A DNA stretch of 64,000 nt from Macrostomum lignano. Lineage: Eukaryota. The stretch's first letter is position 1. Each line of letters opens with the position of its first letter. Positions 743 through 63,400 of the stretch are shown here, in pieces. The stretch covers positions 26,839 to 90,838 of the forward strand of contig NIVC01003568.1 in assembly GCA_002269645.1 (NCBI GenBank), in the 5' to 3' direction. The position numbers and the translations under genes were made by a program. A model generated the notes under the pieces. It worked only from the letters and a program-made list of their open reading frames with translations. It searched no databases and had not been told where the DNA came from.

Positions 743-4020
<3,278 letters not shown>

Positions 4021-12123: not shown

Positions 12124-13026
12124 TCAATCCAGCAACTTGCACAGCAGGTACTCGGTGAACTGTTGGCTGTCCGGGGCGCAGCCTCCAGACGATGCAGCCA
12201 CTGTAAAACCGTGCGACAGGAACAGTCGCAGCACCTGAACAGAGTTGAGGTGACAGAAACCGTTCAGCGGAAATCGAATTACGTAATCCGAGTCAAGCTG
12301 ATTCCAACTTGCGTTGCGCGGCTCCATCAGGGAGTCTGTAACATCCGGGAACAGCTCGGCTAGCAGGTGCTTCCGACCGGTGATCAGAATTCTCTCCTGT
12401 AGTTCCGGTCGCACGGTCAGCGTGACACACTCGCAGTCCCGCTGCTGCCGTTGCCAGTTCAGCTGCGACTGCTGCTGCGGCCTTGCACTTCGTCGCAATT
12501 GTTCCAACTGTCGTAGCATCCCAGACAGCTCGTAGAACTTCACTTCTTCAATGAGCTGATCAAGCTCCTGGAAGTCATGTGGCGTAGTCACCCGTCCTGA
12601 GCGCAGGTAATTAAGCACATGGCGAAACAACTCCCCGTCCCGGTCGATAAAATAGTGCTGCTTTAGCGTGTCCAGTACTATCGGTACCGATCCGTTGAAC
12701 ATTTTCCCCAGCCGCGATTCAGGATAGCGGGTCAGCGTCTCCAGCGAGGAGGTGTACGCCACGCCGCCGACGTCGATGTGAACGGGCGCGGTATAGCGAG
12801 TTGGAGTGGCCGGACAAGGCACGCCGCTAATTTTGGACAGAAACAGCGAACTAATATGAGCCGAAGAGACGGTTACTGATGATGATGAGCACGGTAGCCC
12901 TGCTGCTAGACCTGAGGCCAGTCCGTTGCTTGGTGGGCTGCCGGATCGCATAGCCGCAGCAGCGGCGGCTGCCGCAGCCGTTAGCAAAAATTCAGCTGGC
13001 TCCTTCTTCACCGGGCCGTTATCCAT
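12124..13026 (-). CDS. KCTD15: BTB/POZ (T1-type) domain protein, KCTD1/KCTD15-like, single exon, 300 aa
   Basis: PVHIDVGGVAYTSSLETLTRYPESRLGKMFNG...HYFIDRDGELFRHVLNYLR; C-terminal YVIRFPLNGFCHLNSVQVL...FTEYLL. Confidence 0.92.
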   Translation of the reverse strand: MDNGPVKKEPAEFLLTAAAAAAAAAMRSGSPPSNGLASGLAAGLPCSSSSVTVSSAHISSLFLSKISGVPCPATPTRYTAPVHIDVGGVAYTSSLETLTRYPESRLGKMFNGSVPIVLDTLKQHYFIDRDGELFRHVLNYLRSGRVTTPHDFQELDQLIEEVKFYELSGMLRQLEQLRRSARPQQQSQLNWQRQQRDCECVTLTVRPELQERILITGRKHLLAELFPDVTDSLMEPRNASWNQLDSDYVIRFPLNGFCHLNSVQVLRLFLSHGFTVAASSGGCAPDSQQFTEYLLCKLLD

Positions 13027-14576: not shown

Positions 14577-14800
14577 CGGCTGTAGCCTAGTGCTCTGATG
14601 TGCCAGCGGCCCAGGCTCGATTCCCAGTGCAGTCGCATTAATTTGGGGCTAAATTTTAATCTCGGCTTGGGTCTGCTCGAGCAATATTGACGCCCTTGAG
14701 GGCAAACACCCGAGAGGCACAGCTTGAAGTGTACATGCCTACATAAACTTAAGGCCGTTGCACACCCCTGTGTAAGTGTGTACCTGTAAGATTGTCTTCG
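14577..14800 (+). mobile_element. tRNA-derived SINE family A
   Basis: ggctgtagcctagtg (A box), ggctcgattccc (B box-like), and a body matching the reverse complement of 28460-28735. Confidence 0.7.
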
Positions 14801-23863: not shown

Positions 23864-30112
<6,249 letters not shown>

Positions 30113-30514
30113 CTTCACACCCAAACTGCTGACTGCCTGTCTGTGATCATTTCATTCACTTCAATTGTTGGCTTTGTCTGTTCATTCTACTGCAAGTAAT
30201 ATAAATGAATTATTTTGCTATTATTGCATCCCGTGTTTAATGTCTCTGCAAGTGCTCTGCTCTACTGTAAACCTAATTTCCGGCTTAAACCCTGTGCTTT
30301 TTATTCCAGATTTTTTCTTTTTTCGCTTTTCATTTTTTCTCGGTTTTTATCTTAATTTGCTAATCGAGTGTCATATTCATCGTCCCAATATTGGCGTGAT
30401 TTCTATCAGTGTTCGATGCTGAGCCAATCTAATTAGGAACGGATCTGAATATTCCTCATTTGCAGTACCGCTTCTGCCATCGGAGCTTTTACCTAATGTA
30501 TTGAACCACTCGTA

Positions 30515-31590
30515 TGTGCACCCTCTGCTCCAGCCCCCAGTGTACATCCTCTGCTCCAGCCCCCAGTGTACATCCTCTGCTCCAGCCCCCAGTGTACATC
30601 CTCTGCTCCAGCCCCCAGTGTACATCCTCTGCTCCAGCCCCCAGTGTACATCCTCTGCTCCAGCCCCCAGTGTACATCCTCTGCTCCAGCCCCAGTGTAC
30701 ATCCTCTGCTCCAGCCCCCAGTGTACATCCTCTACTCCAGCCCCCAGTGTACATCCTCTGCTCCAGCCCCCAGTGTACATCCTCTGCTCCAGACCCCAGT
30801 GTACATCCTCTGCTCCGGCCCCCAGTGTACATCCTCTGCTCCGGCCCCCAGTGTACATCCTCTGCTCCAGCCCCCAGTGTACATCCTCTGCTCCGGCCCC
30901 CAGTGTACATCCTCTGCTCCAGCCCCCAGTGTACATCCTCTGCTCCAGCCCCCAGTGTACATCCTCTGCTCCAGCCCCCAGTGTACATCCTCTGCTCCAG
31001 CCCCCAGTGTACATCCTCTGCTCCAGCCCCCAGTGTACATCCTCTGCTCCAGCCCCCAGTGTACATCCTCTGCTCCAGCCCCCAGTGTACATCCTCTGCT
31101 CCAGCCCCCAGTGTACATCCTCTGCTCCAGCCCCCAGTGTACATCCTCTGCTCCAGCCCCCAGTGTACATCCTCTGCTCCAGCCCCCAGTGTACATCCTC
31201 TGCTCCAGCCCCCAGTGTACATCCTCTGCTCCAGCCCCCAGTGTACATCCTCTGCTCCAGCCCCAGTGTACATCCTCTGCTCCAGCCCCCAGTGTACATC
31301 CTCTGCTCCAGCCCCCAGTGTACATCCTCTGCTCCAGACCCCAGTGTACATCCTCTGCTCCAGACCCCAGTGTACATCCTCTGCTCTAGACCCCAGTGTA
31401 CATCCTGTGCTCCAGGCTCAATGTGCATCCTGTGCTCCAGGCTCAATGTACACCCTCTGCCCCAGTTCTCAATGTACACCCTCTGCCCCAGTTCTCAATG
31501 TACACCCTCTGCCCCAGTTCTCAATGTGCATCCTCTGCTCCAGACCCCAGTGTACACCATCTGCTCCAGCCCCCAGTGTACATCCTCTAC
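30515..31590. repeat. 26-bp minisatellite (cccccagtgtacatcctctgctccag)n
   Basis: About 40 units; divergent variants are clustered at the right end. Confidence 0.97.
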
Positions 31591-32319
31591 TCCAGCCCCA
31601 AACCAAGCACCAGAAACCGAACATTGTAATCCTAGTGCAACTTCAATTTACATCTGATCGAATTCCAAATGTACGACTTATGAATAAACTTTGTACACAA
31701 CCAACTGCAGATAGGCCCGGAATGTACTGTAATACCGAATGGCCAGTGCCCCTTGTTTTTGCAGCCCACCTAAATAAATGCAAACAATAATATATAATGT
31801 CTATTGTAAATTGCTTACTACAATATACGCTTGGCATGATTTATTCATAGTATTATAACTGCTTGCTTCCATACAGTTTTAACTGCAAAACTTTAACTAT
31901 CCATTTTCCAACCAGTTTTTGAAAGTCGTTTCTGAAATATTACAAGTGTACGTTTATTAAATATTTTAATATATAGATTATTACTATGGCCTCATTTAAT
32001 TTAATGCCTATAAAGCATCTCTTATAATTGGCGCTTTTCGCTTTCCTGTAAAATATTTTTGCTAAAAATTATAATTAGCTGCTAGTCGAAATTATATAGA
32101 CACTAAAATGATTAATTACCTGTGCTTTTTCTACTCAATACAAATTTATCAGTGAATTGGTGACTCTCAGCTGTTTTCTCATGTCCTAATTTTATATTAC
32201 TTTAAGTAGAACTTTAATGTATAAGTATTTAATTTTTTGTTTATATGAAATTCTTTTAACGCAATATAATAACCTGAAAACACACCGAAAAAACACAACT
32301 TTTTATTTTAAATTCAGGA

Positions 32320-35122: not shown

Positions 35123-36163
35123 TCACAGCGGAGCTATCTGTGCAAATTTTCCGCAGATAATTTTGCGCATTTCCCGTCTATAAGCTGGCGAGGCGATGAT
35201 GTACATGATGAAGTTGACCGTGTGGTTCAGGTAGAAAAACATCTCCAGACCCGTTTGAATGAACTCATTTGTAGCTTCGTCAGCCGGGCTGACCGTCGGC
35301 AGGGTCGGCCTGATGTTCAAGAAGGTGAAGAACGGGACAAGAAAGATCAGGAAGGCCACCGAGATGGCCAGCGTGAGACGGATGGAGTTCTTCAACGCCT
35401 GCTCCTGCTCGCTGTCGCCGCCCGAAGAGGAAGCGACAAAGCGTCGCTTGATGCCAACAAAAAGTAGGCAGTTCATCACCAGCGTGACGCCGGCTGGCAC
35501 GCAGGCGACCGTGGCGAAGGCGATGGCATTGCGCACCGACCAAGCCGCCAGCATGTCCGGGCCGGCCCAGCAGTACTGATCAACCACGGTGCCGTTCACC
35601 GTTACGTAGTTCACCTACACAGAGTCAGGCATTGTGAGGTGTCAATTCTATTGGACCAGCTTGGATTTACGCTGAAATTTTTCACACATTTCATCAAAAC
35701 TAACCTGCAGTCCGACCAGCAGGATGGCGTTCTTGGCCAGCGCCAAGACTGTCAGACCAGCCAGCACGGCTAGCGCCGCCTTTCGAGTGCACCACTGGCG
35801 ACTTTTGAGCGGCAAGTAGAGCGCGAGCACCCGGTCCATGGACACGCAGGGAACTAGCCAGACGGCCACGTCCGACACGATATAGTTGACAAACATCTGC
35901 GCCTTGCAGCCGGTGTCCGTCTGGGCAAAAATATCAATATTAGAGACGCCCAGAATGAAGTAGCGCCAGCATAGCGTGTGCACGGTGAGCGTGTCAGCCA
36001 CAGCCAGCGCTCGTAAGTAGTAGGACGTGCTGGTCGTCTGCTTGGACAGGTGTAGCAGCATGTAGGACAGGCAGTTACCGATGGTTGATGCTGCAATCAT
36101 TGGCAAAGTGACCAAAGCTAGGAACTGTCGGTGGCGTTGAGCGATCAGATCGGCCGCGTCCAT
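35123..36163 (-). CDS. Rhodopsin-family GPCR (invertebrate peptide-receptor-like), 316 aa; exons 36163-35705, 35614-35123
   Basis: TM1 IGN, TM2 LAVAD, TM3 SMDRV, TM6 FLIFLVP, TM7 NHTVNFIMY; one 90-bp phase-0 GT-AG intron. Confidence 0.9.
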
Positions 36164-41035: not shown

Positions 41036-42589
41036 TCTGGTGGTAGTTAGTAAACGAAAAACCAATAGACGAGGGACCTTGAGGACATGAAATACAAAAG
41101 CGTAACAAAGGCAACTTGGAGAGATTCGATGTCTTGTCTAACTCTAAAACTTTCTGTCCAAAGTTCAAATCAAATGCAACTAGCGACTACATCTTTCGAT
41201 GATGCCAGTCCTTTGAATTTTGATTTATTAAGCAATTATAGAAGTCTCGAGCTCGAACTCGAGTATCAGCTTCATCAAATTGCAGCTGCAATCAGGCATG
41301 AATTCACCAACCCAGTTTGCAGACGCAGGCCCTGGGACCCACCCAGCCTTCTCATTCTTGCTTCATCTGTCGCGTGCGTCACCAAATTTCTCACACAAGC
41401 GCCATAAAAGCTTCATCAATTGTTTCTTTTCACAATCCAATCTGCGCAATAACGCTGTGCGACATGCAGAACAACAGAACAGAAGCTTAAACTGATGACA
41501 GCTCAACAAACAAACTTTCATCACATGAAGTAGTCTTCTGGTTGAATAGTGAATCATTCTACGAGTGACTCATGTATGTGCCCTGTATTTCATCATCATT
41601 TATCATAGCAGCTACAAGAGGGCCTGTTTCTAAGCGTTGCTTGCGCAGCATGATAAGTATAAAATTTCAAGATTATTCAAACAATTTTCTTCCTGTTTAG
41701 TTTCATCGGATTAGAATTCTGTTGGTTTGGGTCTGTAAATCTAGGCTAGTCATTGAGGTGCCAGGTAACAGAGCAGTAGCTAGTTAGATAGCTTGTACCG
41801 TGCACTTACCCTGGCTTTGGGCCTTTTGCTTGTCACACGCATTCTGCATGAATTGATATTTATTGCACACATGCGATCGCTGCTTGGTTTTCTTTTAAAA
41901 ATAAATAAACAATTTGTTCTGCTTCTAAAGCTTTACAGCTAGCCGCAGAAATTTAACCGCCTCACTGAAGCTGATATTCGCGCTTCTGTATAAACTATAA
42001 ACAGTCCGTACCTGCCGCCCCCCCCCCCAGCTCTAGTGGTGACCGTGCAGTCTGAACTGATCGGTAAGACGGTAACCTACCAACTACTGTATAGGTTCAA
42101 CTCTATCCGAATCTCTAACCGCGCATCAGTGTTTAAGTATATAGCGCTTCCGACTAGGCGTCTGCACCTTAAACATCATTGTAATTTGCTGGCAATTTAG
42201 GCTGAATATTCCGTATACGTTCGTACACGCCTGCGGTAACTGTACATGAATAATGAGTGCACTATAATTTGCTCCTACCACTGGGTCTACGTTGCTTAAA
42301 CATGCTTTTATTCGATGCATCAAGACATTAATGAAGGAATGGACAAAATGTATACAAGTATGATGCGCTGTAGAGAGATAGAGAGAGAGACTGGAGAGAG
42401 GCGGGGATCCGGGATCGAGAGAGAGAGGGTACAATAAAATCAGAATGAAATCAGGCTGAGGGCTAAGAGGGAAAGGCCAGAAAGATATTCGAGTAATGCA
42501 GGGATCAGCAAACTTTTTAACTTAAGGGCTCGATATACTCGTCGAATCTAGCACATGACTGTGGGCCAGTGGCAGGTGAAGAGACAAGT

Positions 42590-43290
42590 GGGAATAGGGA
42601 GAGAAAAGAAGGGAGAGAATCGGAGAGATTGGAGATAAGAGGAGAGAAGAGACCGAGGAGGAGGGGAGAGTAGGGGAGAGAGGAGAGTAGGGGAGAGAGG
42701 AGAGGAGGGGAGAGAGGAGAGGGGAGAGGAGGGGAGAGAGGAGAGGGGAGAGGAGGGGAGAGAGGAGAGGGGAGAGGAGGGGAGAGAGGAGGGGAGAGAG
42801 GAGAGGGGAGAGGGGAGAGGAGGGGAGAGGAGGGGAGAGAGGAGAGGGGAGAGGAGGGGAGAGAGGAGAGGGGAGAGGAGGGGAGAGAGGAGAGGGGAGA
42901 GGAGGGGAGAGAGGAGAGGGGAGAGGAGGGGAGAGAGGAGAGGGGAGAGGAGAGGGGAGAGGGGAGAGGAGGGGAGAGGAGGGGAGAGAGGAGAGGGGAG
43001 AGGAGGGGAGAGAGGAGAGGGGTGAGGAGGGGAGAGAGGAGAGGGGAGAGGAGGAGAGAGGAGAGGGGAGAGGAGGGGAGAGAGGAGAGGGGAGAGGAGG
43101 GGAGAGAGGAGAGGGGAGAGGAGGGAGAGAGGAGGGGAGAGAGGAGAGGGGAGAGGGGAGAGGAGGGGAGAGGAGGGGAGAGAGGAGAGGGGAGAGGAGG
43201 GGAGAGAGGAGAGGGGTGAGGAGGGGAGAGAGGAGAGGGGAGAGGAGGAGAGAGGAGAGGGGAGGAGGGGAGAGAGAGGAGAGCTGAGAA
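42590..43290. repeat. GA-rich low-complexity tract (gaggagagggga)n
   Basis: Nearly pure purine repeat; explains the spurious LSP-rich ORF. Confidence 0.95.
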
Positions 43291-44935
43291 GAGACACCAA
43301 CCTTGAGCGGGCCAGATTGCTATTGTGGAGTTTCAAAAGACCCAAAGGCCGGTTAGAGAGGCTTCGCGGCCGCATGTGGCCCACAGTCCCGAGTTTGCCG
43401 ACCCCTGGAGTAATGAGACGAGAAAAAGAGATAGAGAGACAGCGACAGGGAGGAGGGACAGAGCTAGAGGGAGCAGAGATGATGGCAGGAAAAAACTCGA
43501 GGTTTCGTCGACCGGCTGCCCCTGACACTGCTGGTGTCTTTGTCTGCGCCAAGGTCGAGTAAGCAGCGGCGGACCGGCTGTAAGATTTTGCCCGTGCCAT
43601 TCGATATTAAGGTGAATTGATTTGTTTAGCTTGACCCCACAGAAAATTTTCTGGATCAGGATCGACTTCTTCGTTGTTGTTGTGTTAATACTGACTCACC
43701 CCATGGGAAATATACGTTTCATTATTTGTATATATATATTCGAGCGTCGGTTTCTGCATAATTATTGTACATTGGCATGAGACCACCAGTATAGGAATGG
43801 AACCTGAGAAGCGTGCAGTGTTTATGCAGCATGTGTATCGAAATATGCAGCTTGTTCTATTATGCATAGAAAGCGAAACTCGGCTCTCGTCTTTGCTTTC
43901 CTAACCAAAATGACAGAGTGGAGACCCACCTTGCGCAAGGCGTTCTCGTGTGCGCGTCAGAGAGAGGGGGGTGTGAATTCTGAACAGCAGAGATTTAGTT
44001 TCACCAGGCACCAACATTCCCAAGCAATGGAACCCCAAAGCATGCGCCCTAGTTGCTTTTGCAGCAAAAGCAGCACTAGGGGGGCATTTCGACCTGCTTT
44101 TGACGTACATAGAGATTCTGTAGCTAAATCCGCGGCGCATTAAGCAGAACAGGCGTGGGTATTTAATTTCACTTGGCCTTCGCTTTGCACCAAATGATTC
44201 AAATAGCTGCGGGGGCTTGAACAAAGTTTTCACCAGGCCGCAGACCTTGGCCTGACGTGGCATGCGTGAGAGAGTCGGGTGGTATTATTATTCAGTGAAA
44301 AGTGATACGTCAGAGGCAGAGCCAGAGCCAGGCCACGACAGTTTGCCATGTGGAGAGACTTTACCGAAGCGAAAGAACTGATGAATTCGTCATTAGTAGA
44401 AGATAAGATAATTAACAAACAAATTTATAAAATTTTGATATCTACGAGTATCGATTGAACTGATCGTTGAGATCGAGTATAAAACATTAAAGCCTGTGAC
44501 GAATTCAGGATTGTCGTGCGGGGTTGGCGGGGACTAGCTTTTTATCTCAACACGCAACGGTGCCAAAGGAGTAAGAGTAAACTAGAAAATTGATAGAGCA
44601 AGACATTATATAGAAAAAAAGAGATTAAGGGCGCCTAAGACTCAAGTATAGTGACTCCTGCTTTGTCAGCAGAGATGCATGCTACTCGCTGTTGCAAACC
44701 CGAATGTACGTTTAGCGAAAATCGGGCAATTATTAATAGAGTACAAGTGTACACTGTACTCTTCTACAACAAAACGGGTAAAAATATTAGTCTGGTCTCT
44801 CGTGCTATGGGAACAAAATTGCAATATAACACCAATATGTGCTTAACGGTGCTCAAGTGTAACACAAATGAACTGCTGCAAAATTAATAAGTTTGTTGAT
44901 TTGAAACAATGATCCCGTCACTGGTCACGGACAGA

Positions 44936-47900
44936 TCAAGTCGCTTTTCCTTGCTGCTGCTGATCCTAAAAAGCGAATGAAAGCCAAAATTTAAAAAATC
45001 ACCTTCGTTACTACTAAACAATAGTAATGCAAGCAGTTGCGAAATTCTGCTAACCTGAACAACTTTTCTTCGCTTCTCTTCTTCTTCCTTTAATGCTTCG
45101 TACTTCTGCAGCGAACTCTTCAGCTGGCGGACTAGCGACTCCGTGATTGGCGGGAAGATCTACGAGGCGTGGGAATTAAGTTCAGACCGAGACGACTCAT
45201 TTTGATCTGTACTAGCAGTCTTTTGGATTGTCCCAATCCTCCAATCGGTTAATTTAGTCATCCTAGCAACTGCCATTGTCAAAACTCTCACCTTGGCTAC
45301 GGCCTCGAACATGGGGATCAGGACGAAGCGAATGAAGCCAATCTGAGCGGTCGGCTTGGTCACTTTCTCCCTGTCCATGAACGGCGCCACCGGTAAGCCC
45401 TCGATCTTTTCCCGGTCCGACTGAAACGGTAACATTGCGGGGCGTTGTAGGTTTATGAACATGAATACAGCTGTAATCATTTAATTTTTACCTGATTAAA
45501 GTACTCCTCAAGCAGACAGTCGACCCATGGCTCGCTGACCTCCAGAGGGCGAACTTCGTTCGAGATGTCGCAGCATTTGATGAGGACCATCTTAAGCTAG
45601 ATGTAAGATCGATCGAAAATTAGAATCCGCAATTAAACTGGTTACGTAGTAGTTTTACAAGAAAATATGCGCATTCTTACTACGAGTAGTTCCGTAAAGG
45701 CTGCTAAGTCACATGACTATTGATTATTTGTCAAGCACTGATAGGATATATTTATAGCCTCTTGTCACGTGGCTGCTGACATCAGCTCAGTCTGAGAAAC
45801 GTCATGGGCAACTCACAGTGTCTGTGTGTTCCTTCTTGGCGAAGTCGAATCCTTCTTCGATTCTTTTTTTGAAGTTCTCTAAGATCTCGCCGTGTCTGGC
45901 CATGTCGGTGGCCAAAATTAGCATTGTCATGCCCTGCAAGAGTAGGGAGCGAGAAAGGCCTATAATTTCGAAATTATATCAATAGCTCGTATGTTCGATG
46001 GCAGAATTAATTATCATATGCTGTCATTTCGCTTTTTCTTGCTTATCCAGTTGCTGAAATGGGCATGAAGCTTGAATTCTTGACTTTCAATATTTAGCTA
46101 TGATAGACCAGTACGTTCTGTTAGGAATTGAGTCTTCATGCATTAATTCGCTGAATAAATTTCACCTTTCGAATGCGCTGAAACGTGTCCTTGTCCACAT
46201 TGGCAAAGATGTTCGTCTCAGGGTTGTTGAGTATCTGGAAGGCCACGGCGCAGTGGTGGTTCTCCAGGGGACTAATGTCGTTGTACCTGATAGCCAGTTC
46301 GGTGCGGGCATTAATCTGGTAGGTATTGTTGTATCCCGGATGGTCTAGATCGTGGCAGATTGCGGCTGTGATCAAAATGCCGAGGTCCTCCTTGGGCAGT
46401 TGGTTGTTGAGGCCGGTAAGGTGGATCATGCCGTACATCATCTGGCAGACGCAGAAGCAGTGCCGAAAGTTGTGAAACGGGTTGTTTCGATAGTTGACTT
46501 GAATGCACAGCTGCGGACAAATGGGTTGGTCAAACCGATGCACCAGTGTACTTCTGCAACTTAAAGCCAAGAAACGATCAGATCATAACTCACAAGCCAT
46601 CTCTTCAGCGTGACTGGGTTGATGTTGAACTCTTGCATCAGCCCCAGCTCATGGTACATATGCTCCATCAAGCTCAGCATCTGAAATAATTAATATTAAA
46701 TGCGAAGGTCATTTCAGATGTACTTATACGAGCGTACTTTAATGCATTAATTAAAGAATTCTGACCTCATTTGGCTCCCAGTGCCAGATGTCAAATGTTG
46801 GTTTCTTCAGATATTCGACTGTTTCTTGCGTTAGAATGTACTGCAAAACGACATTGAAATGATCCGTATGAATTTGGTGCGCTAATATCCAAGTTGCTTA
46901 TAAACAGCGGTGTTGTAAGACAAATATCTTTATATGGACTTTCTAAGAAGCGGACAAAAGCTGACATCAAAGTGTAACCTGCAAGTACAACCATAGGAAC
47001 AAAGCAAGTGAAATACACAACAATACAAAAATTCAACTATGACTTCATTTCGTGAACACTTCGCGGTACATATATGGAGTTCGGTTATTTCACTGAAGTG
47101 GTTACTTCATCGCTAAATTAAGGAATACCTTCTGAAAGGCGGGAACGCGCTTTAGACTAACAAATTTGATGCCGCTCTCATCTGTCACGAGCACATTCTC
47201 AGCCTCCTGCGCTGGCGCTGGCATTCTGCATGTCGCGTGGGGCAAAGCGAGCATGAAAGCTGTATCATATCTGGTCAGCAGTGATATCTAGTACTAATGC
47301 AGCACAATACATTCATAACGGTAATAACTATTAATAAGCTATTTAAAACTATGCTACTAGCAATTGGACTTATCGAATTCTTATTATTGTTTCTTTTTTT
47401 CAGTACAGAAATAGCACCTTTGCGTAGAGAGGCGCATTTCGCCTAGCATCGGTAACTTTAATCAGTTCACCATTGACAGAGCAGAGCAACTGCTGAATCT
47501 GGCTGCTAAAATTAAAATAGAAATCAAATGTCTGAGTTTTACAACGTTAAACTTTTGATCCAAATCTTATTTTTTGAAAATGGTGGCGTGCATTCGGTTT
47601 GAAATTGAGACAGATTGGTTTTCAGAGGAAAAAATTGCAACTCACAGATTCTTGCTCGGCGATTGATTGATCTTCCGGCCATGCTGCCACACCTGGTCGC
47701 GAACTTCGCTGATGTCCTTCTTGCACTTTTCAATCTCAACCAGCTTTAGCGACTCGGCTGTGGGGGAGGTATTTAAAAGTCAGGTCATTGTTGTGCGGCA
47801 AAGAGTAACTTGAAAAACATGATACGCCTGTCAGGGAAGTATAGACGCGTAGCAACAATATAGTGCGATATTCTGTGCTTTTTATTTAGCTTTTAAACAG

Positions 47901-48544: not shown

Positions 48545-49562
48545 GTCTGCTTACAGTTGCAATCGCTTACGGTGAAAATTCCCTCTAGGATTTGTACAAT
48601 AAACTCAGTTCACTTATCGACTCTCGAACAGCTCCCGTTTCTTGTAAGATTCTTTCACCTCAGCTAAAAAACAAGTCGATTTTCTCGGCCGGCCCGATGA
48701 AAGCAGAGAGAAAGAAAAAGACTGCGAGCGGGCAACGCCTTAATGAAGACACGCTGCTCAGTGTCGAATTACTATGGGCGTTCATGTGCTCGGCTCCTGT
48801 CTCTCGTCCCCTCTTTCTGTTCACCATCAACGACCAGTCACGTTCCAGATCGCCTAATCTCCCTTTTTACAGTTTCTTCCCCCACTGCCTGCTCATAGCT
48901 TATTCTGCTTTAACTTCCCCGAGTTCCAGTCTCCTGCTCGAGCCTGTCTGACTCCGACCAATCAGCCGATTTCATGTCATGAACGTTCGAGTAATAATCG
49001 CACTAGCTAATGGGACTTACCGCCTAGTAATCCTTCTGCGCCTCCGTTAGAATCGAGAAGAGATTTTTCTCGATGTCGTCTCAGTCTCACCTCATACTCG
49101 CACTCGCAACGCACTGCATATGGGCTTACCTCTTTTTCGCTTCGTTCCTTTTTTTACAGTAAGAAGTAAGAGCACTGGTCACAGCTTTCCTTTCCCTTAC
49201 TCGCCGAGTTGAAACGAAGGGGTTAATTAAAAGCTCTCTGTTCCCATGTGCTTGCCCGAAGCTTCCCATTTAATTGGAGGTCGTGTCTTCCTTTGTAGAC
49301 GAAATCCACGAGTTTCCCTTTATAGTGCATCACCTGACCAGCGACATATCTTTCCACAACAACAGTGTGTGTATCCTGTCCAAAACCCGTTTAACCAAGA
49401 GAAATTCGCGTGTCTTTGCTTATGTTGTGCATTTTGCCTCAAACAAGCCACGATAACATGATACTCTTTCACACGATATATTTTGGACAAAAGTAACATT
49501 AAGAAGAATACATACAAGGTTCCAATTAGTATAGGAGGATAACTAATGCCTAATCTGTCATG

Positions 49563-49675
49563 CCGTGTAGCACTCCGTGTAGCACTCCGTGTAGCACTCC
49601 GTGTAGCACTCCATGTAGCACTCCGTGTAGCACTCCGTGTAGCACTCCGTGTAGCACTCCGTGTAGTACTCCGCG
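49563..49675. repeat. 12-bp tandem repeat (ccgtgtagcact)n
   Basis: About 9 units. Confidence 0.9.
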
Positions 49676-51189
49676 TGTACGCATGCATTAACTAATATAG
49701 TTATCATGGTTTAGCGCTAAATTCCTTTTGGAGATCACTTAACAGTATATTATAGCACGAGCATTTTACGATTATTACTCGTAATTAGGCTGGATTAAAG
49801 CCAGCGAATGCCTTAAGAAGAATTCTATCAAGAGATCAAGAGATTAAAAGCAGAGTTCAGTTTTTGACGCAATTCTTTATATTATTATAATTTAATTTCA
49901 TTTGACGTAATTCCTTTTTACAAATACTAGTCTATTTGCCTTAAATAATCGTACATGAAATTGCACTCCCGCACTCTTCTACTCCCAAGAATGTCAGTAT
50001 AGCGATGAAACAGCCTTCGAACAAGTCAAGCGATGAGAGTCAGTCTCGATCCAGTAAACCCTCTCTGCTGCGCGTCTGCTGGTCCCAACTGGCTTGGCGC
50101 TTTGCCGAGAAAAGTCTCAAGTCAAAAAAATTCTAACAAGAGCCGAGAAATAGTTGTTATGTCGCTAGTAGTTGGGGCCTTCTTGACAGGCAGTCGTGTG
50201 CCATTGATTGTGCCACATTGTGCCTTTACTTCTTCGATTCTTGCTTTACTCTGTCAGAGCTTTGTTCTAAGACTTGTCACCTGCTAAAATAAAAATGAGG
50301 GTCCATTTAAAGGACTGGGTAGGAGAAATAATAACCCATTTATTTTCAAGTTGCCAGATTATTCAATATTCAGGTCACAGATTAATTCAGCCGACTTCTT
50401 TTTTTAAATGACGACGTTTGAAATAAGACAGCTCGTTTCTAAGAAAAAACGCTCATTTTCTCCGAAATCGAAAGACCTTTTTGTTTTAGGTCTTTTAGAT
50501 TTTTAGACAGCAAAAGTTTTTTTAAGTTTTCTTCTACTTTTCTTCTACTAGTCTTAGTCTTTATGATGACTAAGAAATTTCATGATTACTGTTAGTGTTT
50601 AGCGTTCTGTCTTAGTTTATAGATGGATATTCGCGTTTATTGTGTTTCTTTTGACTTTTATCTCGTATTTTTTGTGTTTCTAAAGACCCTATCTTTTCAA
50701 GGCCCTGGTCAATAACAGTAACGGTAACAGTAACAGTAACGGGACAGTACTGTAACTTACTGGCCACAGAGATTGAGAGATTTAAGAGATCCATTTAAAT
50801 TAATATTTTGACTTGCCAGCTAGCTTCCTAATGTAATGGCTTAGGCTAAGTCAATACTTTTTGCATCAACTGTCTAATTGATAATCTGCAATACTGCTCC
50901 ACAATATGTTAATGTCACATGGATTTATAAAGAAGTAATTTAGTTTGAAAAATTGAATTTTGCCCTATTTATTACTTCGTCTTCAACTATGTTGAAATAA
51001 AAGGTAGGCCCCTAAAAGAAAAATAATAATACAGAGTATATTTAAGATCATATCTCATATATTTATATACTTAAAATTTCTAATATTTATTTAGAACAAC
51101 TGGTATATATACTTAGCATGCAATTTTAGTATATGGAAATAAGCATATTTAAAAGATCTTAGAATTTCCTTTGGTATTGGCCTTAACAA

Positions 51190-51382: not shown

Positions 51383-52920
51383 GACCTATAACATACTATA
51401 TTCCAAATCATATAGATAGTATATGTCACAGATCATTATCCAAGGTATATGCCTAAACAAAAATTGAATAGGCCCCCTAATTACAAATGCATGCCAAGAA
51501 AATTGTGTGCACATCTATTCCCAAAATTATGCCAGTGTTGTGACAATAAATAAAATAAATATTAAATGACCTTTTTATATTGTGACCATAGGCTAATTGA
51601 CCTTTTTGTATTGCATAAAAAACCTTTTTGGTAGATAATTTAGTTGATTTTTATGCTTTTTTAGTAGTACTATTCATAGTAAAAAATCTATATATAAAGA
51701 TTTATTAGAATGCCTTATTGCAAGCTTAAAAAACCAAAAAAAACTTGTAATTTACACTTAAAAATGAACTTTTTTCATCTTTTTTTCTAATTAGGCCTAA
51801 CATTAACTCTTTAGCATGATTTTATAAAGTGCACATCAGATGTGCATGCATATTGTTTTCTTTGGAGTGATGCATGCCAAATATGCACACTTACTTTTGG
51901 TATGCAAGGCAAATGCATGCCCAAATTTTTATATGTATACTACATGATCTGTAGTGTATGGTATGCATGTATACTATTTTCTTAAGAATGATATACACCA
52001 ACTGTGCATGCCTATTCTGTCATACAAGGCCAATGCACACCTAAATTTTTAGGCATATATTACATGATCCATAGTGTAGAGTATATATCCAAAAATATTT
52101 GGTGTGTATTGGCCTTGCATGCCAAAAGTTAGATGTATACAGCTGGCATGTAAGACTCTTAAGAAAATAGTGTGCATGCATTCCTGGCATGCAAAGCATA
52201 GAATCACACAGAAGAATTAGTGTTAAGTAGAAAAAAAGATTTAAAAAAGCATTAATTTAAAGCTTTCTAGTTTTTAAGGTTGTAATATACCATTTAGACA
52301 AATGTTTATATGTATCAGTTTTCACTATAAATATTAAATAGTAAAGGCAAAAAGAAATCTTGACTAATAAAAATATAAAATCAGCCAAAAAGGGTCCTTT
52401 AGGCAATGCAAAAAAGGTCATTTATTATTGTAATATTGGCATAGATTTAAGAGTGTGGGTGTGCACTTAAAGTTTTTTGGCATGTATTTGTAACCTTTCA
52501 ATTTTTGTTTGAGCATACACCCTGAATGATCCAGACCATGGATAACATATAAATAAGAAAACATAAAGTTTAATTTATTTACATTTATACAAACCTTTAG
52601 TTTTATATAAGGTATAATAGTAATGTATTATTTGTATTCCAAAATGTATAGTTATATTTGTTTAACAATAATAGAAATCAAAAAAATAATTACTTAATCA
52701 CTAAAATAATCTTTATCAATCTTAATAATCATTTATTTAATGCCAATAAGCTTCTCAATTCCTATTTTAAAAAATTCTAGTATTTTGGCCAAAAAATAGA
52801 TTATAAACAAAATTTCTACTTTTGCTATAAAATAATGCTAGGCCTTATAAATTTTTAAACTGATGCTATAGTTAGAAAGCTGGCATAGTATATATAAAAC
52901 TTTTGGAAGATAATCTATGT

Positions 52921-53217
52921 CATACATGCGCAACAGTCGGCCGAGTCGGCCGATCCGGCCGACTGATTTGGCAGCCAACCAAGGAAGTCGCAAAAATGCC
53001 CACCCAAAAAATACCCACGCAGTAGTACTAAGTAGCTGACGAGGCATTTTTGCCTGATAAGACAGTCATAGTTACTCCCGCCGTTTACCCAAAGTTGCGT
53101 TAATTTTGCTTTAGGGTTTTTTTACATGTAAGTCGCATTTTTGGCCAAAAACTACGTCGCATTTTTGTTAAAACTAAGTCGCACAGCCGACCGAATTTTG
53201 GACGTTGCGCATGTATG
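52921..53217 (-). mobile_element. 297-bp MITE (hAT/P-type ends) carrying a 28S rRNA-derived segment, copy 1
   Basis: 14-bp perfect TIR CATACATGCGCAAC; 8-bp TSD ATCTATGT (52913-52920, 53218-53225); subterminal tgcgact repeats. 53090-53027 matches 28S GGGTAAACGGCGGGAGTAACTATGAC...AAATGCCTCGTCATCTAATTAGT at 53/64. Confidence 0.9.
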
Positions 53218-54189
53218 ATCTATGTACTATCTATATGCTATTCCTATGTTGTAGGCCTAACTTATAAAACTGTCAACTAGATCTTTTGGTTAATATTATC
53301 TCATTAAAGACTGTGCCTAATAAAGCTTAGGTTTAGGTTAAAAATAAAGACATTTAAAACAAATAAATGTATTGCCAAGTGTAAAAAATGTGCAAAATAT
53401 ATTGTACTTAAAACGCATTCTATTTGCCCTAGAACTTTATAGAATTTTAATACTTTTTAGTTTTGAATAACTAGTAATTTTGTACAATGTCAATATTAAT
53501 TTTTTTGTTTTATACTTTACTAATAAATTATCAGTATTATTTACTTTTATTTTGTTTAAAAAAACCCTACTAAAAACTACCTATAATAAAAGTATATATT
53601 CATTGAAATATCCCAATATAGTCTATAAACATATATAGTCTATAGAAATTAACATTTGGAAATGCAAGTTAGACTAACAAAAATTACATGTTTTTAGTTA
53701 GTTTCATCAAAAAGTTGTGTGCTGCATACACAAGAGATCTTTAAGCTATGATGTGATTATTGATTATGTGTCTAATGTATCAGGGACCCTTTGTGTATAT
53801 TATGATTATACTCTGAGTGCATTTTTAGCCCTTGTATATTCTTAGAATTTTCTATAGCAATGACCATCTTCTTGAATATAGGACATGTAAGACATTGGCT
53901 AAGCTAGGATAAGGCATTCTATCTCATTTATCTTATAGTCTTAACACATTGTTCCATTCTATTACATTTTATATTGCTTTTATACTAACAAATCTTTCCA
54001 TTCTAATAAAGAACACAAGGCTATTATAATGGTCTATTTTTTAGCTAGGACACTAATTTTTGAATAAAAATTAAGAATCTTGTTGAGCATTGGCAGCTGA
54101 TTGTTATGGCTGATTTAAATTTTTAGTGACTAAGTGCTTGATTTATACTGCTAAGTCAGTGTAATATAGTGAAAGCTTTTTTTGCATCA

Positions 54190-54465
54190 CATACATGCGC
54201 AACCCCCCTGATTTACACTGCCCATGCGACTTACTTTTTTGACCAAATATGCAACTTACCTGTGAAAGAAACCCTAAAGCAAAATTAACGCATTTTGGGT
54301 AAACAGCAGGAGTAACCATAACTGTCTTATCAGGCCTAAATGCCTCGGCATCTAATTAGTACTATGTCTGTATTCTTTGTGGTGGCATTTTTGCGACTTA
54401 CCCCTGGTCCACCACAATTTATGGTGGCCAGATCAGCCAGGTCAGCCAGCAGTTGCGCATGTATG
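54190..54465 (+). mobile_element. 276-bp MITE of the same family, copy 2
   Basis: Same 14-bp TIR; 8-bp TSD TTGCATCA (54182-54189, 54466-54473). 54297-54360 matches the 28S segment at 51/64. Confidence 0.88.
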
Positions 54466-55600
54466 TTGCATCATATATTTTGTATCTATGATAGTCTATA
54501 TAGAATAGAATATTCTGATAGAATAAAGACTGGTATATTTGTGTATTTGCATAATATGCCATGCATAAAAATATAGCTTTTGGTTTATAAATAGTATGAT
54601 CTTGACTCTAGTAATAGGGAGGCCTTAAGAAATATAAAAGCAATATGCTTAGGTATACCTAAGATATACAATAGAGATTGACATGTTCTTTTTTCTACTT
54701 AAAATATTTCTAATATTCTGCCTATTAGAATGGCAGCAAGTCTTTAGAATAATGCAATACAATATTAATTTATCATGCTGCCAATTGCCACCAAGCTAAG
54801 ATTTTGCAGCTTGTCTTTCCTAGTATGTGAATTTTCATGGATAACTATTAATTTGTAATAATCCCTTTGTCTATTGATAGTTTATCTATTGAGTAAATAT
54901 GCAGTTTTTTCTTTTAAAACTGTTTATTTGCTAGCTGAGAAATAAACATAGAGATAGGATAGGTAGATGTTCTATATTACATCATCCTGTTTATAAATAC
55001 AGTGTAATCAAATCTAGTAAAAGAAGCATTGATTTGTAGAATCTAATACTCTTGGTTTATACTTAAACTACATATTTGCTACTACCATTGACTATAATAA
55101 TCATATTGCAAAACTTCTTATTGAGTGCTTATATACTATTTATAAAGGACACAGATATTGCATAGAAAAATCGTTCAAAACAATTAATTGCTATTTTAAC
55201 CTATAGCTTTTTAATTATTTTTGTTCTGCTATTTTGACTAACTGGCATTAGTCAGTTAAGGAAACTTATTAAATTGTTTTACTTCATACACATGTATTTA
55301 TTTAGAAAGCATTTTTATTATTTAAGTTTTAGAAAGCATAAATACTTTAATGAGAATTGAGAATTGTTGATCTGGCTAATACACAAAAATTATTTGCAGA
55401 TAGTAGTCTTCAGAAAATCAGTACAAAAGAGTTTATATAAAAGTGGTCTAGGTTGTATTGGGATACATTAAAATTGTCTACAAGAAAAAAACTTTTCAAC
55501 TTGAAATTACTGTTGTTCTTGACTGTTACATAAGACATTTCATCTGCTGCTTCTTATCAACACTCGAGCCTTATTATTTGTCCAGTAAGAAATCGAGTTT

Positions 55601-58127
55601 CTAATGGATAAATACGCTGGAGAAAGTGTTCCATGCTACAGCAGCAACCAGCGCTGTCGTCATTAGCCACAGCAGGGTGGCATCCGCGATGGAAGCAGCC
55701 CTCGAAGCTTCTACATCCATCGCTGTCATTGCTGTCAGAATGTAAGGGCCTCGCGACGGCTGCTGAGAGCTTTCTTTTTCATTCTCAGTCGACAATTGAC
55801 GCTTTCGTCGGCGCCTAACTGCAGTGCCGCAGGTCTGCAAGCAGCGTTCGTCTGGATCCGTTGGTGTACATATTGTAACATCGCAGAATATGTAGGCCTG
55901 CGTGCTGACAGTTTGGGTGAATGACATGACGGCAAAATTGATGCCTATATTCTTTTCGTCAACTCGGAACACGCTGTTGGCGTCTGTGGCACACTTGTTC
56001 CTCACTACGTAGTAGCTTGCCCCAGTGCCGTCCGACTTGTCGCTGGCCCAGCAGTTGCGCACGGTCAGGCGCACGTTTAATGGGCTGGTCTCGCGTACCC
56101 TGGCGTAGATTCTCGAGCCAACTACTAGCCGATCGCCGGGTGCGATTTCGCTTGAGAAGCCTCTGGCATTGTACGATCTGTAGAGCTTGACCTTTATTAA
56201 TTTGGAGTAAAGAATGATTGAAAATTTCTTAGCTAGACGTGGCCTACTGTCAAATAACCTTGTGAACAAATCTTGACTAATCTGGCTGATTCCTTATCAC
56301 CGACCTACTTACAGGTCCCAATTTTCGAAGCATGGTTTGCGACTCAACGCTTACAGTTTCTGCTTAAATGCGCAATTTCATTCTTATTGTGAATTTTCAT
56401 ATTACTAGACCGGATAAGCTACAGTTCTTTCCAATTTCGCAAATTGGAAGATTTTTGACTTGACGAATTAGCAAGTAATCCTTGAACTGAATTTAGTTCT
56501 GCAATCAACGTCGCATGCCTACCTCTGATGTGTAACTATCGCCTCCCGTTATTGGTGGGGCCGTCCTAGCGTCCGGTAGCAATGCTGCTGTCACTTCCTT
56601 GAGCTTTGGTATCGCGCACTCCACTGGTATAATATAGGGCACATCCACATAGACTCCACTAACAGCGGTAACATTCCTATAGAGCATTGAGGTGTATATA
56701 ACATGCGTAGCATTAGTCGTCTGAACGCTATTGCAGCCAATATAGGGCACAGTTGCCCACACTGTTGTAGAGTTTTCATTTTTTGTAAAATTGCACGTAG
56801 TTTCATTGTACGTTCCGTACAGGCTCAGCAGGCTGGCGGAGGCGACGTCAGTGTATGTGAAGAATACATTCGCAACGTATAGGTGGCACACAACAAACGG
56901 TGCGGGTATTGGCGGTGGTGTTAATGAGATCTGGCTGCACCGAACGCTAACTGCTGTGTTTGGAGTACAGTAGCTAGGCGCTGCGCCCCAGCCGTTGTGC
57001 TTGCAATCGTTGGTGCTGGTAGCGCCAGCGGGGCATTTTAGTCCGGATAGCATCACAGGATAGCTGGCCGCTGTGGTTAGGTATTTGCCAGACATGCCTA
57101 TGGCATTTGCTGTTCTGAAAATTGGAAAGTTTCACTATGTTGTTGCGGCTTGGTTTTGCAAAGCCTAACTTACTAAACAAAGAGTTAACTTACTCATTGC
57201 GGCAGAGCATACGGCAGATGGTGGCCGCCTCGATGGCACTAAATCCAGCTGCGCAAATAGTACCGAAATTATCTCCGCCCAAGCTGCCGTTCTGAATGAG
57301 CACGAGGCCTTCCTCTGGTCCAGGATCGAGCCTAAGACTAGTGATAGTATTGTTGCAATCGATCGGAGCAATTGTGGCAAAGTCGGGCGGCAAAGTTGGA
57401 CCAGGCGTGCTGGTTGTTTGGGTTCCTGTGCAAATAACAGCCGCATCTCTACCGTTTCCTGCACAATCGGGAGGAAATGAAGATACAACATAGCGACAGG
57501 CCGTTTCCAAATTCCAGGTGCTAGTTGATGCTTCCTGTAATCGGTTGCGTTTGCATCAACAATAAAACCAGTTTTTGCCATATCTTGTTATTCGGGTTCC
57601 ACTTTTGTTTGGCTTAATGTGCCATAACATAATGGCTTAATGGTATGCTATAATGGTATGCCATAACAGGTGGCTTAATGCCGCTACTTGTGTCAATGTG
57701 ATTTAAACTTACTAAAAAGTCTGGACAGCCACTAATCGCCATGACCGTGTTCGTGTTGCCAACGGTATACGGTGGAAGATCCACTTTGAGTCCAGTGACT
57801 CCTCTGTATCCGAGCATAGCGCATACCACAGACGCACCATTGTTATCGAAGCCGAGATTGCAGATTCTACCTACTGCTCCCGTTGACATTGTCACTTCAA
57901 CAACTCCGAGGTTGGGTTTCGAGCCGCCAACTAGGCGGACACTGACTGGCCTTTGAGAATTAGCTGTGGATTTCGTGTAGATGTTAGTATTGCTTAGAGT
58001 TTTTTTTCAATTTTTAACTCAAATAGTGAGAAAATGACATTGTGTACTGCAGTTACTCACCGCTAGTAATAAAGAAGCACGAAAGGACCACTAGCTTCAC
58101 AGGAAGCAGCCGCCAAAGCTGTTTCAT
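55601..58127 (-). CDS. SRCR-SRCR-ZP type I membrane protein (DMBT1/CUZD1-like), multi-exon
   Basis: Signal-peptide exon MKQLWRLLPVKLVVLSCFFITS (58127-58061). SRCR motifs VRLVGGSKPNLGVVEV..GRICNLGFDNNGASVVCAMLGY and EEGLVLIQ..GTICAAGFSAIEAATICRML. ZP-N and ZP-C cysteines, furin site RRRRKR, C-terminal hydrophobic segment. Confidence 0.88.
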
Positions 58128-60029: not shown

Positions 60030-61843
60030 CCGTTGAAAACGCTACCCTAACAAGAATCGCCAAAAAGTCGTTGCAAACAACTCACTAGTGAATCTAGAGA
60101 CTCTGGGTAGCTCTTGTGACTTTTTAACGACTTAAACGCGTCAAATGTGACGGAGAGGCGCGACTGTTGCGTCACAAGCGCGTCACGTGAGTTGTAGAAT
60201 CGTAAAAAAATCGTTGAAGAATCGTTGTGTTGGCGCTTAACTTTCGCCTGAGATGCGACTAATTCAACTAGCGATGCAAATACGATTCAAACTCAACTCC
60301 GTGACTCTACAGCGACTCTGGCAGGCCTCAAATAGGACTCTTCCGCTCCAGAGTCAATGTACCGTCGCGCCAGAGTCAATGTACCGTCGCGCCAGAGTCA
60401 ATGTACCGTCGCGCCAGAGACACTTGCATCGCGCCAGAGTCACTTGCATCGCGCCAGAGTCACTTGCATCGCGCCAGAGTCACTTGCGTTGTGCCAGAGT
60501 CATTAGAGTCGCGCCAGAGTCACTTGCGTCGCGCCAGAGTCATTAGAGTCGAGCCAGAGTCACTTGCGTCGCGCCAGAGTCATTAGAGTCGCGCCAGAGT
60601 CACTTGCGTCGCGCCAGAGTCTTGCGTCGCGCCAGAGCCACTTGCGTCGCGCCAGAGCCACTTGCGTTGCGCCAGAGTCACTTGCGTCGCGCCAGAGTCA
60701 CTTGCGTCGCGCCAGAGTAACTTGCGTCGCGCCAGAGTCACTTGCGTCGCGCCAGAGTCACTTGCATCGCGCCAGAGTCACTTGCATCGCGCCAGAGTCA
60801 CTTGCGTTGTGCCAGAGTCATTAGAGTCGCGCCAGAGTCACTTGCGTCGCGCCAGAGTCATTAGAGTCGAGCCAGAGTCACTTGCGTCGCGCCAGAGTCA
60901 TTAGAGTCGCGCCAGAGTCACTTGCGTCGCGCCAGAGTCATTAGAGTCGAGCCAGAGTCACTTGCGTCGCGCCAGAGTCATTAGAGTCGCGCCAGAGTCA
61001 CTTGCGTCGCGCCAGAGTCTTGCGTCGCGCCAGAGCCACTTGCGTCGCGCCAGAGCCACTTGCGTTGCGCCAGAGTCACTTGCGTCGCGCCAGAGTCATT
61101 TGCGTCGCGCCAGAGTCATTAGAGTCGCGCCAGAGTCACTTGCGTCGCGCCAGAGTCTTGCGTCGCGCCAGAGCCACTTGCGTCGCGCCAGAGCCACTTG
61201 CGTTGCGCCAGAGTCACTTGCGTCGCGCCAGAGTCACTTGCGTCGCGCCAGAGTCACTTGCGTCGCGCCAGAGTCATTTGCGTCGCGCCAGAGTCATTAG
61301 AGTCGCGCCAGAGTCACTTGCGTCGCGCCAGAGTCTTGCGTCGCGCCAGAGCCACTTGCGTCGCGCCAGAGCCACTTGCGTTGCGCCAGAGTCACTTGCG
61401 TCGCGCCAGAGTCACTTGCGTTGCGCCAGAGTCACTTGCGTCGCGCCAGAGCCACTTGCGTCGCGCCAGAGCCACTTGCGTTGCGCCAGAGTCACTTGCG
61501 TCGCGCCAGAGTCATTTGCGTCGCGCCAGAGTCATTAGAGTCGTGCCAGAGTCACTTGCGTCGCGCCAGAGTCACTTGCGTCGCGCCAGAGTCACTTGCG
61601 TCGAGCCAGAGTCACTTGCGTCGCGCCAGAGTCGTTTCAGAGTCGCAGACAATTAAACGCTTTAAAGTGACTCTTAGGCGACTCTTTGACAACTTTTTGT
61701 TGACTTGTACCGTTACATCTCGTCAATTTCGAGTCGTCTGGAGTCACTTCTTTCATATTTTTACCTGTGTTACCTGAAAAGACTCAGGGGCAACGCAAGT
61801 GACTCTGGGACGCTTCTTGGCTTAGGTACCGTTTTCATCGGGT
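60030..61843. mobile_element. Putative non-autonomous element with ~30-bp imperfect terminal inverted repeats enclosing a 20-bp minisatellite (gccagagtcacttgcgtcgc)n at ~60360-61635
   Basis: Left end ccgttgaaaacgctaccctaacaagaatcg versus reverse complement of right end ccgatgaaaacggtacctaagccaagaagcg. gactc/gagtc motifs continue into both flanks. TSD not resolved. Confidence 0.55.

Positions 61844-62047: not shown

Positions 62048-63400
<1,353 letters not shown>

Follow-up and report, generated by a model that had tools for sequence, protein, structure and literature searches.

How a small mobile element comes to carry a piece of a ribosomal RNA gene, and whether that piece does anything there, is the question raised by a 64,000-nucleotide stretch of the Macrostomum lignano genome (assembly GCA_002269645.1, contig NIVC01003568.1, positions 26,839 to 90,838 of the forward strand), the whole of which is called the window below. 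It contains two full copies, A and B, of a MITE (a transposable element of the miniature inverted-repeat type), and these are the copies compared throughout; in the centre of each lies a 64-nt segment resembling the helix 69 to helix 71 (H69-H71) region of 28S rRNA. We think it probable that the copies belong to a non-autonomous cut-and-paste family that captured this 28S piece once, as filler DNA, and now carries it as a passenger.

Anatomy of the two copies and of their 28S segment

The original prediction, made from the letters of the sequence, placed two insertions in opposite orientations with a shared 14-bp terminal inverted repeat (TIR), CATACATGCGCAAC, and every position proved exact (Table 1). 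This repeat occurs four times without mismatch in the window, always as an end of copy A or B, and the complementarity of the ends is 14/14 in each copy; with up to two mismatches allowed, 0.5 occurrences are expected by chance, and none of 100 shuffles gave six or more. The target site duplications (TSDs) agree at 8/8 positions in each copy and differ between the insertions (ATCTATGT for A, TTGCATCA for B); all four halves are perfect. The earlier conclusion that the family is mobile stands. Set in the same orientation, the copies are ~78% identical from end to end with a single 21-bp indel, and neither contains an open reading frame (ORF), stops occurring in all six frames. TIRs at both ends, TSDs of fixed length and differing sequence, and a small non-coding body were found, which covers every MITE property that could be examined, and copies A and B are confirmed as members of a mobile, non-coding, TIR-bounded MITE family with 8-bp TSDs. 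A further short motif, TGCGACTTA, occurs 17 times in the window with up to one mismatch allowed; seven of these occurrences fall within copies A and B, 573 bp in all, and share one strand of the element. The motif makes a good candidate for a subterminal repeat bound by the transposase, like those of Hermes (PMC10368747).

As a separate observation, the two copies are inverted relative to one another and 972 bp apart, with 129-nt arms (53023-53151 and 54236-54364) that are 78% complementary, so that RNA transcribed across the pair might fold into a long hairpin with imperfect pairing.

Table 1. Positions of the MITE copies, their parts and the other features of the window.
Feature	Position	Strand	Basis
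MITE copy A, 297 bp, CpG-rich subfamily	52921-53217	-	Perfect TIRs and TSDs; full-length alignment to copy B
MITE copy B, 276 bp, CpG-decayed subfamily	54190-54465	+	Perfect TIRs and TSDs; full-length alignment to copy A
TIR CATACATGCGCAAC, copy A, window-left end	52921-52934	+	0 mismatches
TIR CATACATGCGCAAC, copy A, window-right end	53204-53217	-	0 mismatches
TIR CATACATGCGCAAC, copy B, left end	54190-54203	+	0 mismatches
TIR CATACATGCGCAAC, copy B, right end	54452-54465	-	0 mismatches
TSD of copy A, ATCTATGT, left half	52913-52920	.	Identical to 53218-53225
TSD of copy A, ATCTATGT, right half	53218-53225	.	Identical to 52913-52920
TSD of copy B, TTGCATCA, left half	54182-54189	.	Identical to 54466-54473
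TSD of copy B, TTGCATCA, right half	54466-54473	.	Identical to 54182-54189
28S-derived 64-nt segment, copy A	53027-53090	-	53/64; 47/49 outside scar; nhmmer E = 5.7e-15
28S-derived 64-nt segment, copy B	54297-54360	+	51/64; 44/49 outside scar; nhmmer E = 3e-11
Non-rRNA left core, copy A	53091-53151	-	90% identical to copy B; inverted-repeat arm
Non-rRNA left core, copy B	54236-54296	+	90% identical to copy A; inverted-repeat arm
Three subterminal TGCGAC(T/G)TA motifs, copy A	53129-53137, 53153-53161, 53175-53183 (cluster 53129-53183)	-	Motif scan
Fourth TGCGAC(T/G)TA motif, copy A	52984-52992		Motif scan
Two subterminal TGC(G/A)ACTTA motifs, copy B	54225-54233, 54250-54258 (span 54225-54258)	+	Motif scan
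Third TGC(G/A)ACTTA motif, copy B	54392-54400		Motif scan
Weak third fragment of the module (CAAATCTGGGTAAACAGCGTGAGTAACTATACCT)	28384-28417	-	MITE profile E = 3.5e-4; LSU profile E = 0.015
Na/Ca exchanger exons	1313-4020		Pfam
Weak kinase-like exon	8795-9577		Pfam
KCTD1/15-like gene, single 300-aa ORF	12124-13026		Pfam
Intact 1300-aa gag-pol ORF, Ty3/gypsy-type retrotransposon with long terminal repeats	19483-23385	-	Pfam RVT_1, RNase H, integrase
HECT ligase exons	27949-29379		Pfam
Rhodopsin-type G-protein-coupled receptor	35123-36163		Pfam
Phosphodiesterase (PDEase_I) exon	46136-46570	-	Pfam
ZP-C-domain exon	55601-56269	-	Pfam
SINE-like repeat, three copies	28490-28730 (-), 14592-14786 (+), 6978-7086 (-)		

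The identity of the central segment was established through its relation to known large-subunit (LSU) rRNA genes. Ungapped agreement with the 28S 64-mer first proposed was recounted exactly, at 53/64 for copy A (read on the minus strand from 53090 to 53027) and 51/64 for copy B, and outside a 15-nt central scar it rises to 47/49 and 44/49. The 64-mer itself is present without mismatch in over 120 metagenome contigs and lies inside full-length LSU_rRNA_eukarya genes in the four contigs checked with Rfam. Because the Rfam LSU model gave no match in the window, at its gathering threshold or at E-values up to 10, the fragment being too short for it, and because a 28S 46-mer was absent from the viral contigs scanned, we built an nhmmer profile from metagenome ribosomal DNA (rDNA), comprising 66 eukaryotic LSU segments of the 64-mer with 300 nt on each side. 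Both copies matched this profile (E = 5.7e-15 for A and 3e-11 for B), and in both the alignment covers profile positions 288-351, exactly the 64 nt. Compared with the 100 nt that flank the 64-mer on each side in 28S, the arms of the element are not significantly similar (58-132 of 300 in shuffle tests), despite the high conservation of the downstream flank in 28S. Since the match stops at the borders of the 64 nt and the arms are not 28S-like, the captured piece is short and sharply bounded. By the measure of this homology, the centre of the element derives from the H69-H71 region of 28S rDNA, as originally proposed.

Further traces of the family were sought in the window and beyond it, and the tally for the 64 kb is two copies and one weak fragment. 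The LSU-profile match of that fragment, at 28384-28417, covers 23 nt; the 7 nt upstream are closer to the MITE junction than to 28S, whose sequence the downstream part of the fragment does not significantly resemble. Membership in the adjoining tRNA-like short interspersed nuclear element (SINE) was considered and rejected, as the two other SINE copies of the window lack the fragment. The simplest reading is that a related element left it behind as a decayed relic. A marginal match (E = 0.11) to the non-rRNA core of the MITE at 10577-10610 on the minus strand, TTATGAGCGAAAAAAATCCTACAGCAAAATAAAC, may be a relic or chance. Scans of metagenome contigs, viral contigs and prokaryotic genome contigs gave no occurrence of a pattern specific to the scar, ACTGTCTTATCAGGCNNAAATGCCTCG, and those of viral and genome contigs none of a 23-nt core, AAACCCTAAAGCAAAATTAACGC.

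Single capture, recent insertion and the state of the fragment

Relative to 28S, copies A and B have in common seven derived positions (numbers 28 and 34-39 in the 64-mer), where C28 has become G and AGGTAG has become TCAGGC; the profile alignment renders the shared changes as a 2-nt insertion plus replacement. Because of these shared derived positions, the fragment must have been present in the common ancestor of A and B, and it was captured once, before the two subfamilies split. Today the bodies of the copies differ at 58 of 244 aligned sites, with all 28 TIR columns and all 16 TSD pairs unchanged, and arithmetic from these site counts gives a probability of about 6e-6 that neutral decay in situ would have spared the TIRs and TSDs. 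Copies A and B are therefore recent insertions from two long-separated master lineages, which had diverged by ~24% beforehand, and the ends of the element are kept by selection for mobility.

The two subfamilies differ sharply in CpG content. Copy A retains 21 CpGs (observed/expected 1.31), compared with six in copy B (0.45) and a ratio of 0.83 for the whole window; 13 of the 21 in A are TpG or CpA in B, and the reverse occurs 0 times. The six CpGs that remain in B comprise the two in its TIRs, two in TGCGACTT motifs, which are among the subterminal motifs of Table 1, and two others, a pattern of survival that fits selection on cis sites only. Such one-directional CpG decay between the copy at 52921-53217 and that at 54190-54465 is notable for a flatworm, and suggests that a methylation-type mutation process has acted on one transposable element lineage.

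Comparison of the copies within the 28S fragment gives 86% identity, which is above the figure for all other parts of the body combined (p = 0.04) and no better than that of the adjacent 62-nt non-rRNA core (90%, p = 0.59). Copy B has lost 2 of the 3 CpGs of the fragment, much as elsewhere in the element. The H69 stem (GGGAGU/ACUCUC) contains an uncompensated G-G mismatch in both copies, caused by the change of C28 to G, and one more mismatch in B; the universally conserved UAAGGUAGC has been lost from both, and AAGGTAGCC has been replaced by a sequence beginning ATCAGGC. In fold predictions the genuine 28S 64-mer forms H69 and neither copy does, each folding differently from the 64-mer and from the other (z = -0.9 and +0.3), and no common or unusually stable fold was found for the two fragments. 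Because the fragment is conserved no better than the core beside it, has lost CpGs, has a broken H69 and no UAAGGUAGC, and folds divergently, its sequence and predicted structure give no sign of selection for an rRNA-like state. Retention as a functional LSU rRNA fragment was ruled out by the G-G stem mismatch, the loss of UAAGGUAGC and the absence of H69 from the predicted folds. The roles offered in the original prediction, as a protein-binding site, a nucleolar tag or a source of small RNAs, found no backing in these same features, and the fragment appears to be a passenger without rRNA-like function that presumably evolves neutrally. The degraded state of the third fragment, at 28384-28417, also speaks for a passenger.

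Transposase, capture route and competing explanations

The TIRs of hAT elements usually have the tip (C/T)A(A/G)NG, Buster-type hAT elements prefer nnnTAnnn as a target, and the TIR of the Drosophila P element starts with CAT. The 8-bp TSD of the present family fits hAT elements, its length also fits the P superfamily, and the family TIR likewise starts with CAT. Positions 4-5 of the TSDs are TA in copy A and CA in copy B. Hermes prefers nTnnnnAn (PMC10368747), and both TSDs have T at position 2 and no A at position 7, which is half of that pattern. The transposase responsible may be hAT-like or possibly P-like.

We propose that a transposase encoded elsewhere mobilises the copies, recognising the 14-bp TIR and probably also the subterminal TGCGACTTA repeats, and making an 8-bp staggered cut at the target in a hAT-like or possibly P-like manner. 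The 64-nt 28S piece would have been acquired once, in the common ancestor of the family; the best guess as to the route is that it was filler DNA. Autonomous elements are shortened into MITEs when gap repair aborts, and a template switch in the course of such repair could have copied the piece from rDNA, or from rRNA, both of which are very abundant. Filler DNA is known in deletion derivatives of Ac/Ds and of the P element. The two subfamilies would then have diverged by ~24% before each copy inserted recently.

Several observations weigh against this reconstruction. Core and fragment together make up a central 126 nt in which the copies are 88% identical, as against 64% for the arms (Fisher p = 1.9e-5), a difference that holds with CpG sites removed (p = 7.5e-5), and pure neutrality does not predict a better-conserved central block, for which constraint, recombination between the subfamilies, or arms that are partly non-homologous could be the source. 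The proposition that the fragment decays at the same rate as its flanks thus holds relative to the adjacent core and fails relative to the arms, core and fragment together decaying more slowly. The TIR tip, CATAC, does not follow the canonical hAT form, and the 64-kb window contains neither an autonomous partner nor a further TIR match; the assignment to hAT or P elements made in the original prediction is tentative, in that the 8-bp TSD fits, the tip does not fit the usual hAT form, and the TSDs fit half of the Hermes pattern. The filler-DNA route is suggested by the Ac/Ds and P-element derivatives rather than by anything seen in copies A and B, and it offers no account of the likeness between the TIR and the next 14 nt of 28S beyond the fragment, which agree at 11 of 14 positions. 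Finally, the comparison is one of two full copies.

The fragment spans -36 to +28 around the insertion site of the R2 retrotransposon (AAGG/TAGCC, the slash marking the site), with the scar sitting on that site. Work on R2 uses this same 28S sequence as target, and positions -25 to -19 are reported to be important for the targeting of R2Tg (PMC12222951); up to 36 nt of upstream 28S sequence is retained on R2 RNA after ribozyme cleavage, and for the planarian R2 the reported cleavage position is -28, not -36 (PMC3774820). The central block, including the 28S fragment, might be functional, whether as a cis-acting site that aids transposition or transcription, as an R2-target mimic that binds R2 or an rDNA factor, or as a source of rRNA-like small RNAs. 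The better-conserved centre (p = 2e-5) agrees with such a role, as do the retention of the fragment in both subfamilies despite ~24% divergence and a 21-bp indel elsewhere, its coverage of the upstream region recognised by R2 proteins with positions -25 to -19 intact in copy A, and the inverted arrangement of A and B, which would allow double-stranded RNA to form if they were co-transcribed. However, the fragment is not conserved above the adjacent non-rRNA core, the R2 cleavage and priming site is destroyed in both copies, H69 is broken with no shared or stable fold in its place, copy B has shed 2 of the fragment's 3 CpGs, and recombination between subfamilies or non-homologous arms could equally raise the central identity; we regard a functional centre as decidedly unlikely. 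An origin from R2 itself was rejected, no R2 sequence being found in copies A and B. Because of this, and because the planarian R2 cleaves at -28, the agreement between the 5' border of the fragment at -36 and the limit of the R2 ribozyme is treated as coincidence. For the same two reasons, and several more, we give very little credence to the related idea that the copies are rRNA-derived SINEs of the SINE28 kind or short internally deleted elements derived from R2. SINEs derived from 28S do exist (SINE28, PMC4994717), the fragment does span the R2 site, and its border does lie at the furthest upstream R2 ribozyme cleavage reported (PMC3774820); yet the copies have perfect 14-bp TIRs and a fixed 8-bp TSD, they lack an A-rich tail or one like that of long interspersed nuclear elements, their rRNA piece is central and not at the head, and between -36..-1 and +1..+28 there is a scrambled stretch of ~10 nt only, with no R2 ribozyme or untranslated region. 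The central rRNA piece, the TIRs, the fixed TSD and the missing tail ruled out an rRNA-derived SINE of the SINE28 or SINE3 type, and the ~10-nt scramble at the R2 site together with flanks that are not 28S ruled out a short internally deleted R2 element.

A different link to rDNA concerns the ends of the element. In genuine 28S, the 14 nt directly 3' of the 64-mer are GACGCGCATGAATG in 60 of the 66 LSU segments (for example at 6367-6380 of the 28S-bearing sequence L014), and they match the right TIR, GTTGCGCATGTATG, at 11 of 14 positions in the same orientation and at offset 0. The probability of such a likeness is 4e-5 at a fixed position and ~1e-3 when both borders, both orientations and a few nucleotides of slack are allowed. 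In 2 of 4 complete rDNA units GACGCGCATGAATG is the only match of at least 11/14 to the TIR in the whole 18S-28S unit, and in the remaining 2 equal or better TIR-like matches lie elsewhere. This likeness suggests that the family originated in rDNA by way of a cryptic end, or that a template switched where homology to the TIR allowed it. The family might have been born in rDNA or have passed through it, from a progenitor in a 28S gene whose transposase used GACGCGCATGAATG as a surrogate end, or else by a template switch resolved at GACGCGCATGAATG, with the 64 nt of 28S carried along and the right arm added by later rearrangement. The match itself, its low probability before and after correction, its uniqueness in half of the complete rDNA units and the sharp borders of the capture speak for this. 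It nevertheless appears unlikely, since between the fragment and the real TIR lies a right arm of 92-105 nt that does not resemble 28S, so that the simple model fails; moreover, no TIR-like sequence of comparable quality occurs at the 5' border, half of the complete rDNA units have equal or better matches elsewhere, and the coincidence was noticed after the fact. Possible relic TIRs inside the element at the borders of the fragment (8/14 and 8/13, by eye) are at chance level. The stronger claim that the centre is a working part, in which the R2 target region of 28S (-36 to +28, with the cleavage site itself disabled) has become mobile and binds R2 or an rDNA-core factor, or that the family arose from rDNA because its transposase recognises the TIR-like 28S sequence, seems to us highly unlikely; if true, it would tie a family of cut-and-paste elements to rDNA as well as to the retrotransposons specific to it. 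We take the overlap with the R2 site and the TIR-like neighbour in 28S as leads only. Least likely of all, to the point of being negligible, is that the resemblance to 28S is a chance or low-complexity match or an artefact of assembly from chimeric rDNA reads. The silence of the Rfam LSU model in the window might be read that way, but this explanation is refuted by the E-values of the LSU profile and the identities of 47/49 and 44/49 outside the scar, and two copies that differ at 9 of 64 positions and nevertheless share the scar cannot both be assembly chimeras.

Surroundings of the copies and comparison with known systems

The host is reported to be a hidden polyploid. The MITE copies lie in a stretch of 32% G+C between the phosphodiesterase exon and the ZP-C-domain exon (Table 1), the latter without a match in a homologue search. 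The KCTD1/15-like protein has relatives at ~55-65% identity, with full-length spiralian matches at ~55-58% and no identical protein in the search. The gag-pol ORF matches, at 98% identity, the retroelement parts of two UniRef models of Macrostomum lignano annotated with C2 and B9 domains, and these models look like chimeric gene predictions that have incorporated the transposable element. The copy of the SINE-like repeat at 28.7 kb has a tRNA-like head, GGGGCCGTAGCCCAGTCG...GGCTCGATTCCCAG, which ARAGORN does not call as a tRNA, and it sits in an intron of the HECT-domain gene. Minisatellite arrays occupy 24405-25561, 30377-31790, 42548-43600, 49539-49696, 60962-61777 and 62284-62870 and yield long spurious ORFs in several frames, an example being the 12-bp unit CCGTGTAGCACT at 49.55-49.68 kb. 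An AT-rich segment at 51880-52200 contains complex direct and inverted repeats, with inverted arms of 46 and 39 nt and a tandem duplication of ~120 bp, and may be another small hairpin-like element.

The 28S piece is real and looks like decaying passenger DNA, which makes the family a curiosity and not a new mechanism. It is a clean case of a DNA transposon that acquired a short piece of rDNA and spread it, and it has a practical consequence for repeat annotation, in that scattered 'LSU-rRNA' matches in this genome would be copies of the MITE rather than rDNA pseudogenes. The finding would carry more weight if the central block proved to be constrained across all copies of the family in the genome, or if rDNA or R2 turned out to have a true connection with the family; such a link would matter because the R2 target region lies within the fragment, next to which 28S has a TIR-like sequence.

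The capture of host fragments by DNA transposons is commonplace: in Pack-MULEs, in hAT and CACTA elements that contain gene fragments and in filler DNA, a piece of the host is caught between the ends and amplified as cargo. The present family resembles such transduplicating transposons in its captured host cargo, and differs from them in that the cargo is 64 nt long, non-coding and from rDNA, in an element of MITE size. With hAT MITEs and Ds-like deletion derivatives it has in common an 8-bp TSD, short TIRs that begin with CA, subterminal motifs and a small non-coding body, and the repeated short subterminal motifs of Hermes are bound by BED domains (PMC10368747); here, however, the tip is CATAC, the TSDs fit nTnnnnAn only at position 2, and the family is linked to no hAT transposase. 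Pokey and its MITEs, mPok, which are piggyBac elements of Daphnia, are likewise class II elements with rDNA-derived sequence and involve the same 28S stretch (PMC10946416, PMC4912750). Unlike the present family, which has 8-bp TSDs, lies outside rDNA and carries a 64-nt piece of the 28S coding core, Pokey makes TTAA duplications, inserts into 28S and carries repeats of the intergenic spacer (IGS), and an assignment to Pokey/mPok fails on the TSDs. Mammalian SINE28 is also a mobile element that includes a fragment of 28S rDNA (PMC4994717; PMC10946416, Table 2), but it is a retroposon, whereas the family described here has TIRs, a fixed 8-bp TSD and an internal rRNA piece. A 2024 review of rDNA-derived sequences in transposable elements lists SINEs and terminal-repeat retrotransposons in miniature derived from 5S, SINE28, and the IGS repeats of Pokey/mPok, and its table contains no cut-and-paste MITE with a fragment of the 28S coding core (PMC10946416); to that list the family in M. 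lignano would add a class II case from the 28S coding region.

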